Below, in pieces: positions 25,748 through 33,377 of a stretch of DNA of 64,000 nucleotides. The notes under the pieces were generated by a model. The model was not told the origin of the DNA. It did no database searches and saw only the letters and a list, made by a program, of their open reading frames with translations. The translations under genes and the position numbers were made by a program. Position 1 is the first letter of the stretch. The number at the start of each line of letters is the position of its first letter. This DNA is from Rebecca billardiae RCC1528 (taxonomy: Eukaryota; Protista; Haptophyta). The stretch covers positions 1,922,001 to 1,986,000 of the forward strand of contig OZ251231.1 in assembly GCA_965240325.2 (NCBI GenBank). Direction: 5' to 3'.

Positions 25748-27244
25748 ATGGGAGCGAGCTGCGGCGCGGCGCGCGGGGCCGCGCTGGAGGAGCGGGCGAC
25801 GCGCGCCGAGGGTGGCTGGGATGAGGACATCGCCAAGCCTCGCTCGCCCGAGCGCGAGCCTGCGCTCGCGGCCAACGTCGCGCGATCCGACGCGTGGCAG
25901 CCCGGCGGCGAGCAGACCGCCGCGCCGCGCGTGCCGCGTGGCACCGAGGCGCGCATCGCCCACGACGCGCAGGAGGCGGAAGACGCCGCCGCGGAGCGCG
26001 AGGCGTCGGACGCTGCCTCCGAGCGGCTCACGCCCGCGCGGACCGCGCTCATCGCCGTCGCGCTCGCCGCCGCCACGTACGTGTCCGCCGAGAGCTTCGC
26101 CGAGTGCGCGCGGCTGCTCGCGCTCGCAAACGGGCGCTCGCCGCCGCCCGCGCCGAGCGCGCTGCACGCGTGGCTCGTGGGTCACGCGATCGAGCTCACG
26201 GGCGTCCCGTGCCGCACGCGCGGCACCGGCGAGCGCTGGCCCATCTTCGAGCCCCTCGGCGAGTGCTCGTTCGGCACGCGCGCATACGAGGACGCGGCGA
26301 CGGCGCGGTCGATCGGCAGCTGGCACGCCATCGACGAGCCGGCGCACTCGTTCGCGCTGGGCGCGCGGCTGGCGCTGAACGCGACGCATCTCGCGTGCGC
26401 GGCGTACTTCCTCGCGCTCGCGCTCGCCGCCTTCGCCCTCGGCGGCGCGCGCGCGGGCGCGGCGCGCATGCGCGCCAAGCGCGCGCTGCTAAGCGCGCTG
26501 GGCGCGAGCGCGTGCGCGCTGCTCGGCACGGGCATCGTGCTGCTGGCGTGGCGACGGCCGACGGAGATGAACTACCCGACGCCGAACGAGACGGCGGCGG
26601 CCGCGCTCGTTCCACCTCCCGCCAGCGCCGCGCTCGCCCGCGCGCACGAGGCGGGCCGCCGCGCCTACGCCATCGTGTACGCGTGCGCGCACGCGAGCGC
26701 AATGCTCAACGCGGCAACGCGCGCGGGGCCGGCCGGCGGCGCGTCGCGCGCGTTCATGGGCGCGACGTGCGCGTGCCTCGCGCTCAGCCTCGGCGCGCAG
26801 CTCGTGCACTGGCCCGTGCTCCTCCTCAAGCTGTGCACGCTGGACGTGCTCGAGCACGCGTGGGCGCAGAGCGCGCTGCTGCTCGCAGGCAGCGCCATCT
26901 ACCCGCTGCAGGACGGAGCGAACGCGTGGGCGCTGTACTGGGCGGAGGCGCGCGGCGCGCCGTACGAGTGGCGCGAGCACCGCGAGTTCAACCTGGCGAC
27001 GCTCACGCTGCACGGCGTGCTCGCCGTGCTGTCGCTCGTCGTCCTCCGCGGCCCGGGCCTCTTCTTCGCGACGGCGCCGCCGGCCGCCTTCCAGCTCGCG
27101 TGCTACGCGCCGCCGGTCGCCGCGTGGGCGCTCGCGCGCGGCAGGCCGCACGCGCGCCGGCTGCGCGCGCTGCCCGGCGCAGCGCGCGAGGTTCGGGCCG
27201 AGCGCGACGAGGAGCACAGCGTCGTGCGCCGCCTCTCGTTCTAG
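25748..27244 (+). CDS. Polytopic membrane protein of unknown function (possibly DUF2306-like)
   Basis: 498-aa ORF with about 7-8 hydrophobic segments, coding-like codon usage and a His-containing EWREHREF motif. Confidence 0.6.
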   Translation: MGASCGAARGAALEERATRAEGGWDEDIAKPRSPEREPALAANVARSDAWQPGGEQTAAPRVPRGTEARIAHDAQEAEDAAAEREASDAASERLTPARTALIAVALAAATYVSAESFAECARLLALANGRSPPPAPSALHAWLVGHAIELTGVPCRTRGTGERWPIFEPLGECSFGTRAYEDAATARSIGSWHAIDEPAHSFALGARLALNATHLACAAYFLALALAAFALGGARAGAARMRAKRALLSALGASACALLGTGIVLLAWRRPTEMNYPTPNETAAAALVPPPASAALARAHEAGRRAYAIVYACAHASAMLNAATRAGPAGGASRAFMGATCACLALSLGAQLVHWPVLLLKLCTLDVLEHAWAQSALLLAGSAIYPLQDGANAWALYWAEARGAPYEWREHREFNLATLTLHGVLAVLSLVVLRGPGLFFATAPPAAFQLACYAPPVAAWALARGRPHARRLRALPGAAREVRAERDEEHSVVRRLSF

Positions 27245-27816
27245 ATCAGTGCTCAGCGTTCGGGACCCTGATGCACGCCTCATCATGGGCTGTGAGGAAA
27301 AGTCCCAGTGTGGTTTGGTGCTGGATGATGAATGTTTCCAGTCTGCACTCTGCGACTTGTCTTGATGCTGATGATGTTGATGATGTCTTGATGATATCGG
27401 CGGCGAAGCCCTGGTCCACAAAAGGGGGACCTACCTGTACACGAACAGTTTTCTAGGCCGAACGACATTGATGAGAGTTCACAATACCGGTTCCCGAGTA
27501 TGATTGTACAAAGATCTTCTGATCTTGAGGTCGCTCAGAATCCCTCGATCTCGCCCATATCCGCCGGCGGCCGCGCGCCCGACCCGCCCCGAGCAGACAA
27601 TCTCGCCATCTCGGCTCGTCGCCGTCCAAGGCTCCAGCCGGACGGTTGCCATGCCACCGGTAAACAGTTCGAACCCCTGCTTGATCGCCAGCCTCGGCGC
27701 GCGCGTCGCTGACGACGGCGGGCCGAAGAGTGCTCGCTTTGCGGCGGCGTACCCGCACAGGTCAGAACTGGCCCCGGCCGCGCCAGAGCTCGCTCGCTCG
27801 CTCGCGAGGCAGGCCG

Positions 27817-30800
27817 ATGGGTGCGTGCGGTAGCACGAATGCGACGGCGGCGGACAAGGAGCCGCTGGCGACCGCCAACTCCAAGTCCGACGACGTCGAG
27901 GTCGCCAAGCCGGGCGAGGGCATGAAGTCGAGCGAGTTGTCGCACGACTCGGACGAGCTGTTCGCGCACGTGGTGTCGAGGCTCCTCTTCCTGCTGATCG
28001 GGGTGGGGTACATCATCGTTGCCGGGCTGGCCGCCTTCGTGCCCCCCTTCCTCTCGACGGGCTTCCCGATGTACCTCCCCCAGGACCTGGTCGACGACGC
28101 GATCGCGATGGACTACCTGCGCATCGCGCTCACCGCCGTCTTCCTCATCGGCATCGGGTACGTGCCGATGGCGCTGAACAACAAGGAGGAGCTGATGTTC
28201 GCGTCGCTCTTCAACAAGCCCTTCCTCCTGCTGCAGGCCATGCTCGCCTGGGGCCTCGGCGTCATGTCGTTCTCGGTGTTCTTGCTCGTCCTGCTCGGCG
28301 ACATTGGCAGCATGATCGTCACGCTCATCATGTGGGCGTTCTACCCGTCGATGATCCGGAAGGAGCACCGCCGGCTGCTCGGCTTCATCCCGTCGGCGCC
28401 GACCCGCAACATCCGCTCGTACCTCCTCGAGTTCGAGGGCTACTTCATGCTCATCTCGTTCTTGCTGCTCACGATCCCGCCGATCGCGCAGGCGTTCGGC
28501 TCGGCGGAGGTGGAGCGGCTGCACTTCACGTACTCGGGCGTCGAGCTGAGCGGGCACCGGCTGGGCATGTTCGTCACCGCCACCTTCTGGTTCGCCAACA
28601 TGTACTGGTTCTACATCCCCGCCGCGCGCGTCAACTCGTCCGGCTTCATGGCGGCCGCGCGGCAGCAGCGGCTCGTGATGGTGCTCGGCTGGATGTTCCT
28701 GCGCATCTTCAAGGACGACCTGGAGCACAACCTGGTGAACTCGCTCGCCGTGTTCGGCGGGCTCTTCCTCGGCCTCGACCTGTACGCCACCACCTTCGAG
28801 GACTACTTCCGCCGCAACCCGATGGACGACGACATCGAGCGGCTGGCGGCGGCCGACGACTCGTACGCGCTCTTCCACCAGGCCGAGCTGCCCAACTCGA
28901 GCCGCTGGGTCGTGTGGCACTCGGGCTGGGTGTTCATGACGTCGAACATCTGGATGTTCTTCACCTCCACGGGCTTCCCCTACCTCTTCGGCAAGGTCTT
29001 CCCCGGCAAGGTCGAGCTCTCGTACAAGGTTCACCTCCAGGTGCGTGCGCTCGCGCTCGCGCGCCGTGCGCCGTGCGCCGTGCGCGCGCCGCCGCCGCCC
29101 GCCCGCGCCCGCGCGGCGCGCGGCTCACGACCCGCGCGCGCGCACTCCGCGCCCCGCCCCGGCTGGGTGCGTGGCCGCGCTCTCGCTCTCGCCCGCGCCC
29201 GCGCCGCACAGGACCTCCTGCTCTCGACGCTGATGGGTCTGATCGCCGCGTTCCTGCTGCCGCTCGTGCCGCGCGACAAGACGTCGCAGCTCGTGCTCAA
29301 GACGTTCACGTTCGTGCTGCCGTGGTCGACGTGGTGGTTCACGGTGGAGACGAAGCTGCTGATGCACCTGCGCGGTGGCACGCCGTTCCACATGTCGTGG
29401 GTCGACATGGACCTCGGCACCAAGTTCACCGAGCTGCCCGTCGACATCACGTTCTTCTTTGCGACCTTCTTCATGACGGTGATCACGCCCGCGCTGCTGG
29501 TCGTGCTCGGCATCTACCTGATCGGCTCGCCGTGGAGCGCGTTCAAGGGGATGAACGAGGCGGCGACGATCCGCGAGGCGCTGATCCCGGCGCGCAAGGT
29601 GGCGCTGCAGCACATGACGCTGCTCGTCGCCTTCACCGGCGGCTGGATGATCCTCGTCTCGTCGGGGCTGCCGATGCCGACCAAGTTCCTCACAAACCTG
29701 CTCGGCATGCCGCCGCTGCTGCCGGTCGACACGCGCCTCGCGGTGCAGGTGCACCGGTACGACCTGCTGCTGGCGTTCACCGTGCCCAACGCGATCTGGA
29801 TGCTCTCCGACCTGCCCAACGAGCGCGTCGCCACCTTCCGCCGCGTGAGCAAGCTGTGCATCTTTGCGTCGTGGGGGTACGCCTTCTTCATCAAGCTCGC
29901 GACGCACTTTGACCAGGCGCCCGCGTTCCACCAGGCGTGGACGGACATGTACGGGTACGAGCAGTACAAGGAGGGCGTGACGTACTTCTTCTCGTGGCTC
30001 GCGTTCGTCGCGCTCAACTTCGTCGCCTTCCCCGCGCTCCTCCTCTCCGCCGCGCGCACGTGGGACGGATCCAAGCTGCTCGCGTACAACAAGCGGTACG
30101 CGGCGATGACGACGCCCGAGGTGCTGCTGTGGACGCGCTCGATGCTGCAGATGCACGCGCTGCTGATCTGGCTGACGAGCGGGCTGTGGCTGATGATGAC
30201 CTCGTCGGGCTTCGTCTGGCCCCTCAAGGCCATGTCCGGCGGCAACATCCCGCCCATCCTCCCCTCGTTCGGTGCGGACGGCGCCAACCCGGCCGCGCTG
30301 CGCGTGCACTTCCAGGACGCTATCCTCGGCACGATCCTCGCCAACCTCGGCGTCTTCCTGCAGTACGTGCCGCAGCGGCTGACGGGGCAGCGGAAGGAGA
30401 TGAACTTCCTGGGCAACCAGTGCGTGCTGTGGATCTGGGTGCTCTCGATCTGGGCCAAGGTCATGGTCAACGCGGGCGAGGACGACATGCAGACGTGGGT
30501 GGGGATCGGCGCGTTTGGCGCGTGGCGCGACGTGCGCACGCTCACGCCCGCGCATAACGTGCTCGACTTCATCTGGTACCTCGCCACGCTGATCGGGATC
30601 TTCATCGGCCCGTTCGTGATGTTCTACATGATGCGCAACGCGCTCGGCGACTTCGCCAAGTCGCTGCGCGCCGCGCGCCTCCTCGTCGGCGACGAGGACA
30701 AGGCGGGTGCGGGTGAGGTCTACCTCGGCTCTGCGCTCTTCCTGCTGGTCGGCCGCCAGATCGAGGGCTCCTACTTCTACCGCACGCTCACGTGGATCTC

Positions 30801-32603
30801 GCACATCGTCTCGCCGCCGGAGCAGCAGTACCTCACGGTCGATCGGATCGCCTGTGCGCGCGCCGCGAGTGGCGCGCGCGCGAGTCCAGAGGGGCGCGCG
30901 CGCGCGGCCAGTCGGCGCGGCGCGCTGACCGCCTGCCCGCCCGCCCCCGCGCCCCGGCCGCGCGCGAGCAGACAGCATGCAGGCGCCGTCGAAGAAGCTG
31001 CGGCGCGAGTACTTCCACCAGGTGGGCGTGGGCAAGGACGAGTACGGCTGGTGGCGCTGCACCAAGGTGCCCACCGAGATCGAGCTCTTCCAGCGCAACG
31101 AGATCCTGCCCGCCATGTCTGCGCACACGATCGAGAAGGCTCCCGGAACCTTCCTCGAGATCATGCGCGCGCGCGCGTTCAACGCGAGCCCGTCGTGGAT
31201 GGTGTGGCAGCCGCTGACGGACGAGATCTTCGACGACATCTTCCACTCGCGCTTCGGCGCCGAGATCCTCCGCGCGCCGACCAAGGACGAGCTCAAGACG
31301 TACAACTCGATGCTGAAAAAGGGCTCGGCGTCGACGACGAGCGCCACCAACCGGATGCAGGGCGCAACCAAGCGCGCGGTCGCGCAGTCGCGCAACGACA
31401 GCGTGATCGTGTGCGACCTGACGGTGCTCACGAAGGGCGCGGAGCGCAAGCCCGCGTCGGCCCACTTCCCCACGCCCGACGTCAAGATCTTCTTCACCGC
31501 CACCAAGTACGGCATCCGCGCGATGGGCTTTGAGTTCCAGCACCTGGACGGCGCGGGCGTCGAGCTCGTCTCCAACGACGGCTCCAACGAGTGGCACTAC
31601 GCCAAGCGGCTGTGCTCGACCGCGCTGATCACGGCGCACCAGATCGGCACGCACCTGACGCACGGGCACCTCCTCGTCGAGTCGCAGATGGTCCTCTGCT
31701 ACAAGTACCTCCACCCCGAGCACTGGGTCTTCAACTTTGTCGAGCCGCTCGCCGGAGACGTGCAGTTCATCAACGAGACGTGGGGCCTCGAGGCGATCCT
31801 GTACGGCACCATCATGGACATGGGGCCGTGCACGTCGGACGGGCTGTACACGATCATCAAGAACGCGAAGCAGAGGCCCGCCTTCGAGGGCGACACCACG
31901 TGGAACCTCATGGAGCGCCTCAAGCCCGAGCACTCGGGCGTGCCCGAGGAGTGCCCCTTCCCGTACCGCTTCACCGCGCGCGTGCTTGAGGGCTACGTGC
32001 GCGAGCTCGTGACCGCCGTGGCGAACAAGTACTACAAGCCGGACGACGAGGCGCTCAAGCGGTTCATGAAGGAGGTGTACTGGTGGCGCCCCATCACCGC
32101 CGCGCGGCCCACCACCAAGGAGGCGGTGATCGACTACCTCGTCGAGTTCTTCATGAACGCGTCGTACCGGCACGACTACTCGCACGACGACTATCTGTGG
32201 CACGCCGCGCACGCGCTGCCGCCGCAGCTCAACCCCAAGCCCGTCTTCAAGGACAAGCCGTCGAGCTACCTGTGCGCGCGCGAGGCGGCGCGCGCCGCCC
32301 GCCGCGCCGCGCCCGCCCGCGCGCGCCCCGCCGATCTGACGCGCCCCGCCACGGCCCGGCCCGGCGCGTGCGCGCGCGCGCGCGCCCCACAGCCCGGACA
32401 AGCAGACGTTTGCGATGACGCTGCAGATCGCGCACGCGCTGCAGGCGGGCGTGATCGAGACGCCGCTCGAGGCGTACTACGGCGTGTACACGGACAACGA
32501 GATGCGCCCCGTGGTGGACAAGTTCGTGCAGCAGGTGCAGGGGCTGCTCGTGCTCGGCGGCGTGCACGAGCACATGAACCAGTGCGGCAGCATGACGCAC
32601 TGA
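27817..32603 (+). CDS. ~20-TM membrane protein fused to a C-terminal lipoxygenase domain (introns 29041-29211, 30854-30971, 32272-32392)
   Basis: Starts MGACGS. Many TM helices with strong GC3 bias. LOX motifs WHYAKRLCSTALITAHQIGTHLTHGHLLVE...LHPEH...FIN and SYRHDYSH. The three GT-AG introns join all parts in one frame ending GSMTH-stop. Confidence 0.85.
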
Positions 32604-33377
32604 GCACGCGCGCGGTGCGCGCGCTCGCCGCCGCACTCCGCCTTCCAAGATGGGCAGCGAGCGGCGGCGCCGACGTGACGCATGCGGCACATCCCGCTCC
32701 AGTGACCCGCCGCACCTCTCACGCCGATCGACGCCATGCACTGCGGACCCAGGCGGACCTCTTCGGACATGACGCAAGGCGAGACGTACTAGTAATAACT
32801 CTATCGCCTCAGAGATCGGCACACCCCGCCACCCGCCATGCGAGCCATCAGTGTTACCAGCAACGAGCCGAAGTGATGGCCCGGAATACAGTACTGTACG
32901 CAGTACTATCGTCACCGATGTCCGATTACCGGAGTCCAGAGTCATATTGTTTGAGCCATCATCGTCCGTGACTCCGTGAGTAGATCGCGAGCCGTCCGAC
33001 TGCCCGGTCACGGTGAATCATCATCCGCGCGCCACTTTATCCGATCCGTGGTGACGGTCCGTGCCCGACGGACCGGGTGGCGGGACCGACGGTGGTCGGT
33101 GCCCGTGGCCGTGCGTGGCCGTGGCCCGTGCCCGCGACGGCTCGCCCCGCCCCCGCCTCGCCCGGTCCGCGCGCGCCCCGTCCGCCGTCGCCGACGAGTT
33201 CAATCAATATACGACGACTCGTTAGCCGGCGTAGCGCGCACTGCGGCGACAACTGTACTGATGAGTTATGAGTACCATTGGCAACGGCACTCAGCCCGCA
33301 GGCCGCGCAGCGCGCAGCGCACGGCCTGCCGCACGCGCACCATAATGTTATTAATGGCGCCCGCGCGAGCTAGTTAG

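Follow-up and report, generated by a model that had tools for sequence, protein, structure and literature searches.

A haptophyte gene linking tandem four-helix membrane modules to a divergent lipoxygenase-like domain, and a rare membrane family that accompanies oxylipin enzymes

Introduction

What does a membrane domain of about 20 helices do on the same polypeptide as a lipoxygenase-like domain? The question is raised by a gene on a 64,000-nucleotide stretch of the genome of the haptophyte Rebecca billardiae RCC1528 (assembly GCA_965240325.2, contig OZ251231.1, positions 1,922,001 to 1,986,000 of the forward strand), which is referred to below as the window, and within which the coordinates of this gene are given. 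A first-pass annotation had read the gene as a lipoxygenase fused to three tandem modules resembling StyC, the bacterial styrene oxide isomerase (SOI), and had proposed that the three copies rebuild the isomerase trimer within one chain. Here the gene model, the relatives of the membrane part, their genomic company and their predicted fold are used to weigh this proposal against other explanations.

In corals, algae, plants and some bacteria, signalling lipids are products of lipoxygenase-allene oxide synthase pathways; except in plants, we know of no enzymes that act on the short-lived allene oxide. The jasmonate pathway of plants comprises a lipase, a 13-lipoxygenase (13-LOX), the CYP74 allene oxide synthase (AOS), allene oxide cyclase and OPR3, and its cyclase is a small, soluble, lipocalin-like trimer. 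SOI is a homotrimer with ferric heme b at its subunit interfaces, which converts epoxides to carbonyls through the action of the heme as a Lewis acid. The core of the heme-copper oxidases is likewise pseudo-threefold, with the histidines that act as metal ligands on helices II, VI and X.

Results

Evidence for a single gene

Removing three introns from the locus, which lies in a region with a G+C content of about 65-71%, leaves one frame of 4377 nt on the forward strand that encodes 1458 amino acids and ends in one terminal stop (Table 1). The first-pass annotation had described this frame as linking about 20 transmembrane helices to a lipoxygenase domain, and its reading holds at the joints that could be compared with orthologues. 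An automated list of open reading frames (ORFs) has a 1267-residue ORF (27730-31533) that overlaps a 664-residue ORF (30977-32971) in a different frame; prokaryote-style ORF callers read through intron 1, since it is in frame and contains no stop. An extended form, GTGCG(C/T)GCG...CAG, is common to introns 1, 2 and 3.

Two orthologues bear on the joints. The first is a Logan contig from a related organism (L005), which contains the entire gene with the same order of parts and with introns that lie partly elsewhere. At the codon of intron 1 this contig has an intron of 188 nt that is out of frame, and must therefore be spliced; the protein P0003 reads RVHRFD contiguously at the same position. 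The residues TVDRIAYAMQ lie in a single exon of the contig, whereas intron 2 splits them in the window, between DRIA and Y-SMQ, where the spliced product reads DRIA-Y-SMQAPSKKLRR. An intron also stands at the position of intron 3. The second orthologue, P0074, is a protein predicted from an MMETSP transcript, and corresponds to a stand-alone lipoxygenase part. It is uninterrupted across the joints of intron 2 (LTVDNIARSMQAPSRELR) and intron 3 (ETYLPSKSIYAM), with the joint readings LTVDNIARSMQAPS and ETYLPSKS, and its C-terminal decapeptide, HMNQCGSMTH, is identical to that of the window protein. Two independent orthologous sequences, one derived from a transcript and one genomic and collinear, thus confirm the exon joints and the C-terminus.

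In the window protein, repeat 3 is followed by a tail that aligns with the first approximately 60 residues of P0074, and this tail is encoded in the same exon (exon 2) as the repeat. Hence the membrane part runs without a break into the beginning of the lipoxygenase part, irrespective of intron 2. The fusion had originally been made to depend on the splicing of that intron (30854-30971); the fusion stands, while the dependence falls away. These comparisons support the conclusion that about 20 membrane helices and a lipoxygenase-like domain are joined in one gene. In P0074, the 18 codons left upstream encode no hydrophobic stretch; this protein, apparently without upstream membrane helices, indicates that the fusion is lineage-specific, not universal.

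Two features at the ends of the gene were also observed. An exact copy of the extended donor motif (GTGCGCGCGC; 32604-32630) occurs 11 bases past the stop codon; as the stop precedes it, it does not extend the ORF, and it may mark an intron in the 3' untranslated region. At the other end, the window protein begins MGACG (27817-27831) and the orthologue P0038 begins MGNNC, and a Gly2 with a nearby Cys is the pattern typical of N-myristoylation and palmitoylation. Such acylation would place the N-terminus of the window protein on the cytoplasmic face.

A rare membrane family beside oxylipin enzymes

When 1.8 billion representative proteins were searched with a profile built from the three repeats, 40 relatives were retrieved, to which a second search and a genome scan added further members; the scan used a narrower family alignment, the first being too diverse. 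Neither Pfam nor NCBIfam has a family for any membrane part of the window protein or its relatives, none of which has a meaningful name, and a word-index homology search with the membrane part returned only the window's own unspliced ORF. The relatives come from metagenome-assembled genomes (MAGs) of Sericytochromatia, Gemmatimonadota, Neomarinimicrobiota and Pseudomonadota, from a choanoflagellate transcriptome and from eukaryote-like contigs. The common form is a protein of about 520 residues, made of an N-terminal domain (N-domain), one full module and a three-helix partial module, such that most members have 1.75 modules, not three. Among the residues that are invariant in the 34 sequences of one alignment (A4) are the H-x-x-D Asp of each module, the His in module 2, the stretch G-x-P-x-H-P-x-W after the third helix and one Lys; conserved polar residues in the membrane are H, D, K and those of PFHPSW. 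That the membrane part belongs to a rare, undescribed protein family is well supported.

The company kept by this family is recurrent. Of 11 distinct bacterial loci, eight have a catalase-type allene oxide synthase adjoining the family and seven have a lipoxygenase there, and two of the three exceptional loci end no more than 650 bp from the family gene. Loci with such pathway neighbours come from Sericytochromatia, Gemmatimonadota and Pseudomonadota. On a Gemmatimonas-like contig, the family gene is preceded on the same strand by genes for a lipoxygenase-like protein and an NTE/patatin lipase, both binding cyclic nucleotide monophosphates (cNMP), for a 518-residue small lipoxygenase and for a 431-residue synthase, whose match to the catalase-type allene oxide synthase of corals (PDB 1u5u) has an E-value of 6.5e-69. 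The trio of family, synthase and lipoxygenase is found again in Sericytochromatia, in a Pseudomonadota MAG and in another lineage, with differing gene orders.

The same partners are also joined to the family physically. Patatin is fused at the N-terminus of the family protein in P0064; the synthase is fused at its C-terminus in a 920-residue ORF (L023); the 1904-residue P0033 is a family-synthase-PLAT-lipoxygenase fusion; and in the window gene and its orthologue the family is fused to the lipoxygenase-like domain. The first-pass annotation had proposed a search of other algae and bacteria for the fusion or for StyC-like genes beside lipoxygenases; in bacteria and protists the family stands beside, or fused to, lipoxygenase, synthase and patatin. 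This conserved and repeated link, genomic and physical, of the family to patatin, lipoxygenase and catalase-type allene oxide synthase is the strongest result of this work, is well supported, and had escaped the first-pass annotation.

Two known systems help to place this link. Coral and cyanobacterial fusions of catalase-type allene oxide synthase and lipoxygenase (for example that of Plexaura homomalla, PDB 3DY5) also couple a lipoxygenase to the next pathway step in one chain, and the synthase-PLAT-lipoxygenase unit of the coral type is present in P0033 behind the same membrane family. However, the known fusions are soluble or peripheral, whereas the window gene has neither the catalase-type nor the PLAT domain, and the partner of its lipoxygenase-like domain is an integral membrane domain of about 950 residues. 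The second system is the jasmonate pathway, whose lipase, lipoxygenase and allene oxide synthase steps have functional counterparts in the bacterial clusters (the lipase there being a patatin), as does its OPR step at one locus, where an Old-Yellow-Enzyme/OPR-type flavin reductase adjoins P0008 (L016:2283-3590, reverse strand). Since the clusters hold counterparts of the other jasmonate steps, the place of the cyclase would, on gene context alone, fall to the membrane family; the fold of the plant allene oxide cyclase is unrelated to it. The claim that no protein with the architecture of the window gene has been described stands within the literature searched, in which no paper was found that ties SOI to heme-copper oxidases or describes a membrane partner of the synthase-lipoxygenase pair.

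The N-domain, the repeats and their predicted fold

The three four-helix repeats that had been proposed are real. Local alignments of one repeat with another score 86-100, compared with 33 +/- 6 for shuffled sequences (z = 9.5-11.7), and none of 200 shuffles reaches the observed scores. The modules are 172-190 residues long, with four predicted helices each, and have in common a His where the first helix begins (H368, codon 28918; H542, 29611; H723, 30154), W-x4-S-[ST]-G, V-H-x-x-D in the opening part of the second helix, and Pro, Trp and Lys in the third helix; a P-F-H-x-S-W loop is present in repeats 1 and 2. The motifs and His codons originally quoted were all found where they had been placed. 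The description of the membrane part needs one correction, as the first approximately 350 residues form a separate membrane domain, not a repeat. The possibility that these residues are two further degenerate repeats was ruled out (z of about 0 against the repeats), and they align with the N-domain of the family members of about 520 residues. The position of His406 is kept in the orthologues P0036 and P0038 (KLHLQ) and in most family members.

An AlphaFold2 model of a bacterial member, made with an alignment of 34 relatives, has a predicted local distance difference test score (pLDDT) of 92.7 and a predicted template modelling score (pTM) of 0.89; the model of the window's membrane region has a pLDDT of 78 and a pTM of 0.82, and includes 57 residues from the in-frame intron 1, modelled as disordered. 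The three modules are predicted to pack as one 12-helix pseudo-threefold bundle. The best match to the whole domain is the catalytic subunit of heme-copper oxidases (subunit I) and nitric oxide (NO) reductases, at 8-11% identity, and a protomer of the isomerase (8pnu_G) matches one module at 2.8-3.2 Å over 133-151 of 155 residues. It is well supported at the level of the models that the predicted bundle has structural counterparts of only two kinds, both of them heme-binding membrane enzymes: oxidase/NO-reductase subunit I for the whole bundle, and SOI for one module. The earlier view, which considered StyC only, had thus missed the match to the oxidases.

Other structural searches added little. 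Foldseek, with the bacterial model against PDB and Swiss-Prot models, found nothing, and a feature search of the ESM Atlas found nothing useful; the clusters of the AlphaFold database (AFDB) gave one unnamed relative and a DUF2306-like match limited to the N-domain. The N-domain of the P0008 model (residues 6-262) resembles the structures that AlphaFold predicts for DUF2306 membrane proteins (probability 1.0, with a TM-score by hit of 0.57).

The His of V-H-x-x-D lies about 10 residues into the second helix and, by arithmetic on aligned ranges, would fall within about three residues of H58 of SOI. From these ranges it would sit roughly where the isomerase has H58, and by the order of the helices the module His would correspond to oxidase helices II, VI and X.

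The lipoxygenase-like domain

The C-terminal domain, of about 500 residues and without the N-terminal beta-barrel (PLAT), has no match in Pfam (exons 3 and 4, E<=1) or NCBIfam. Against solved structures, exon 3 matches 14 distinct lipoxygenase chains at E<=0.05, the top one being the coral 8R-LOX (2fnq, E 1.7e-4), and the match spans exon 3 residues 202-363, which include the His-x4-His helix. The domain thus falls below the Pfam cut-off, and is identifiable as lipoxygenase-like by way of solved structures only (E 1.7e-4 to 1e-3). HQIGTHLTHGH begins at H1178 (31637) and includes H1183 (31652), and SYRHDYSH carries H1356 (32171) and H1360 (32183); these four His and the C-terminal His are conserved in the orthologues P0073 and P0074, which are 61% and 47% identical to the lipoxygenase part of the window protein. 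In lipoxygenases the metal is held by His-x4-His, His-x3-Asn/His and the C-terminal carboxylate of Ile. We take the domain to be a very divergent, probably metal-binding, lipoxygenase-like one that lacks the PLAT barrel.

The domain can be compared with the small bacterial lipoxygenases without PLAT, some of which sit in clusters with the membrane family. The domain resembles these in its length of about 500 residues and its His-x4-His and His-x3-His motifs, but differs in falling below the Pfam threshold, in having no similarity by BLAST to the cluster lipoxygenases, and in its conserved C-terminus ...HMNQCGSMTH, where the last residue is His in place of Ile. A direct resemblance of the domain to the 431-residue and 518-residue bacterial neighbours was ruled out by BLAST; the former is a catalase-type synthase, the latter a different small lipoxygenase. 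The small lipoxygenases of two clusters (L006 and L007, from Pseudomonadota and Sericytochromatia) end ...ASISY, hence a C-terminal residue other than Ile is not unique to the window protein.

Other neighbours

Immediately upstream of the gene, the window encodes a further membrane protein (Table 1), whose C-terminal 130 residues are homologous to a 366-residue protein, M366, that adjoins the family in six bacterial loci (detected by tblastn; BLASTP E 5e-13, 32% identity over 130 residues). M366 is the sole conserved partner of the family at the Neomarinimicrobiota locus. M366 and the upstream neighbour have no Pfam family, one fragment giving a weak hint of DUF3522. At one locus (L002:9639-10714, reverse strand), M366 is split into adjacent ORFs of 230 and 127 residues, which may be a frameshift or an assembly error. 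A tblastn search of the whole window with three bacterial synthases found no match.

The clusters contain other genes besides. In a Gemmatimonadales MAG (L023:1136-9492), the fusion ORF is followed by a cNMP-binding NTE/patatin lipase, and the cluster also holds an FAD oxidoreductase, with a weak hint of an MCRA fatty-acid hydratase, an Lnb_N protein and the 366-residue partner, but no lipoxygenase. Genes near P0008 (in the flanks of L008 and L016) include those for a resistance-nodulation-division (RND) efflux pump and for an EF-hand protein that binds cNMP. Domains that bind cNMP recur on the cluster lipases and on one lipoxygenase-like protein, which suggests that the clusters are under second-messenger control. 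On a eukaryote-like metagenome contig, a 1367-residue protein with Patched/sterol-sensing, patatin and EF-hand parts is encoded (L012:10063-14166, reverse strand) tail to tail with the family member P0058.

Table 1. Features of the gene and its upstream neighbour, in window coordinates
Feature	Position	Strand	Description
Upstream neighbour gene	25748-27244	+	498-aa membrane protein starting MGASC
Exon 1	27817-29040	+	Start codon, N-terminal membrane domain, first helix of repeat 1 and loop to KVHLQ
Intron 1	29041-29211	+	171 nt, in frame, stop-free
Exon 2	29212-30853	+	Rest of repeat 1 (to 29556), repeats 2 and 3, soluble tail
Intron 2	30854-30971	+	118 nt; changes frame between the membrane and lipoxygenase ORFs
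Exon 3	30972-32271	+	Core of the divergent lipoxygenase-like domain
Intron 3	32272-32392	+	121 nt
Exon 4	32393-32603	+	C-terminal 69 residues, ending HMNQCGSMTH, and stop codon
N-terminal membrane domain	27817-28869	+	aa 1-351
Three tandem four-helix modules	28870-30666	+	Contain intron 1; predicted 12-helix bundle
Repeat 1	aa 352-523	+	First helix and loop in exon 1, remainder to 29556 in exon 2
Repeat 2	29557-30096	+	aa 524-703
Repeat 3	30097-30666	+	aa 704-893
Soluble tail	30667-30853	+	About 60 residues, belonging to the lipoxygenase part
His406 codon	29032-29034	+	Start of second helix of repeat 1; followed by Asp409
His589 codon	29752-29754	+	Repeat 2; followed by Asp592; counterpart of invariant bacterial H474/D477 (A5 alignment)
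His774 codon	30307-30309	+	Repeat 3; followed by Asp777

Discussion

The explanation that we favour, tentatively and at somewhat short of an even chance, is that this single gene encodes a 1458-residue integral membrane oxylipin enzyme, whose membrane domain is itself catalytic and acts on the products of neighbouring enzymes. Its parts would be the N-terminal membrane domain, the three tandem four-helix modules and, on the cytoplasmic side, the divergent lipoxygenase-like domain. Conjecturally, one or two hemes would be held by the second-helix His-x-x-Asp of modules 1 and 2 (His406/Asp409 and His589/Asp592). The substrate would be a lipophilic, unstable product made alongside, such as a fatty-acid hydroperoxide, an allene oxide or an epoxide, and its rearrangement inside the bilayer, by isomerisation or cyclisation, would give a carbonyl or a cyclopentenone, through a chemistry akin to the Lewis-acid opening of epoxides by SOI.

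Several observations weigh against this explanation. Firstly, the placement of the module His on oxidase helices and near H58 is drawn from helix order and aligned ranges. Secondly, these His are not kept throughout: the counterpart of His406 is substituted in P0025, P0027, P0035 and P0033, the last of which lacks the module His in both of its modules, and the His of repeat 3 is lost in close orthologues (RVGFQD in P0005, RVQLQD in P0002). Thirdly, if the topology follows that of SOI, the module His would lie toward the outer leaflet and the lipoxygenase on the cytoplasmic side. Fourthly, the window gene has no allene oxide synthase domain, and the Neomarinimicrobiota locus (L022) has no lipoxygenase or synthase within 10 kb of the family gene.

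The main rival gives the membrane domain no catalytic role and makes it an anchor and substrate gate, which holds lipase, lipoxygenase and synthase at the membrane and feeds them polyunsaturated fatty acids from the bilayer, its conserved residues serving lipid binding or folding. This is possible, though we think it somewhat unlikely. It would accommodate the fusion of the family to three different soluble pathway enzymes, the persistence of the fusion in P0033 without module His, the variable His of repeat 3 and a number of modules that ranges from 1.75 to 3. However, a domain of 15 to 20 helices, with invariant buried H, D, K and W and a PFHPSW loop across bacteria and eukaryotes, exceeds the needs of an anchor; every bacterial cluster has a free-standing family protein; and the sole close fold matches are enzymes.

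If the membrane domain is catalytic, it could also be a heme redox protein instead of an isomerase, acting as a lipid hydroperoxide peroxidase or reductase, as an activator of the lipoxygenase iron, or as a relative of the oxidases that handles O2 or NO. We consider this unlikely. The best fold match of the whole domain is to the catalytic subunit of oxidases and NO reductases (COX1, CcoN, CyoB, NorB), with which the family would share its twelve-helix pseudo-threefold core; the conserved His stand on helices that by order are equivalent to oxidase helices II, VI and X; and some loci have redox genes and a gene for an AhpC/TSA-family protein in their vicinity. Yet the six-His ligand set of that superfamily is missing, as neither HH (helix VII) nor HxH (helix X) can be read in the corresponding helices of the window protein, which have one His in the second helix of each module. 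Neither the window protein nor its relatives match Pfam COX1, and no conserved partner subunits or electron donors are encoded nearby. The window protein differs from the oxidases further in having an N-domain of about 350 residues and a lipoxygenase attached, in its lack of partner subunits, and in repeats that are still recognisable in sequence, as those of the oxidases are not.

The proposal with which this work began, that the modules are true, if very divergent, StyC homologues and make up an epoxide isomerase, a pseudo-trimer in one chain with three sites for heme b, now appears improbable. In SOI (PDB 8PNU), the axial heme ligand is His58, at the periplasmic start of helix 2, and the catalytic residues are Asn64 and Tyr103 (PMC11374702). 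Its likeness to the window modules lies in a four-helix membrane protomer of about 170 residues that matches one module in fold, in a His that all three repeats have and that, by aligned ranges, would lie near the outer start of helix 2, and in three units around a common axis, as the models predict for the modules; its epoxide substrate is also chemically close to allene oxide. A shared sequence signal is what is missing. Against all PDB chains, a phmmer search with the window protein and searches with two family profiles gave no SOI match at E<=10. A motif alignment of repeat 1 with StyC (AFLLP..DKT..WS) had been part of the original argument, but it is at chance level: for a 49-residue SOI fragment taken from a paper's supplement, which contains the motif AFVLP...DKT...GWS, a 17-residue match to repeat 1 is equalled by 174 of 1000 shuffles, and 167 of 500 shuffles match the module profile as well as the fragment does. 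The resemblance is, moreover, specific to repeat 1. The catalytic residues have no counterparts either, the position of Asn64 (His+6) being L412, A595 and G780 in the three repeats, and no Tyr being conserved in their third helix, where W-F-T-x-E-T-K is conserved instead.

The two proteins differ in other respects. The window family keeps His-x-x-Asp and a Lys of helix 3 in place of N64 and Y103; the units of the window protein are covalently linked, with a large extra membrane domain in front; the His of the third unit is dispensable in its orthologues; and the family is found among oxylipin genes, whereas SOI belongs to styrene catabolism. The idea that three copies rebuild the trimer retains the predicted 12-helix pseudo-threefold bundle, but has against it the loss of the repeat 3 His and the 1.75 modules, fewer than two full ones, of most relatives. 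The V-H-x-x-D His as a StyC-like ligand likewise keeps its position near the start of the second helix, roughly at H58 by aligned ranges, but is Gly or Gln in repeat 3 of orthologues. As the resemblance is limited to unit size, topology, fold, the position of one His and a chemical analogy, the family is better said to work like SOI than to be a member of its family. Hence the StyC interpretation survives in part, as regards fold and idea, but membership by sequence is refuted.

Two further alternatives can be dealt with briefly. A role of the membrane domain in transporting, exporting or sensing the oxylipins of the attached enzyme would suit a large polytopic protein with RND efflux genes near two loci and cNMP-binding and EF-hand regulators in several clusters, but is very improbable, as the predicted bundle is closed and oxidase-like, not two-lobed. 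That the locus is two adjacent unfused genes, a membrane protein and a lipoxygenase starting at the ATG at 30977, directly after the proposed acceptor, has a negligible probability despite the apparent lack of upstream membrane helices in the MMETSP orthologue P0074, as the unspliced membrane ORF overlaps the lipoxygenase ORF, which is in a different frame, for 560 nt and meets no stop, the TVDRIAY-SMQ joint residues are conserved and contiguous in L005 and P0074, and the lipoxygenase's N-terminal tail shares an exon with repeat 3.

A wider form of the favoured explanation would make the family the missing membrane enzyme that cyclises or isomerises allene oxide, or an epoxide, on a Lewis-acid heme, and would in addition make its tandem modules a living intermediate for the origin of the 12-helix oxidase core by triplication of an isomerase-like heme-binding unit. 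We regard this combined proposal as unlikely. From bacteria to protists, a rare and unnamed membrane family is a constant companion of the lipoxygenase-allene oxide synthase pathway, whose enzymes it adjoins in four bacterial phyla, and is therefore a concrete, testable candidate for a membrane step of such pathways. Even as a mere scaffold, the domain would make the window protein the first of a new kind of oxylipin synthase, one that is integrated in the membrane.

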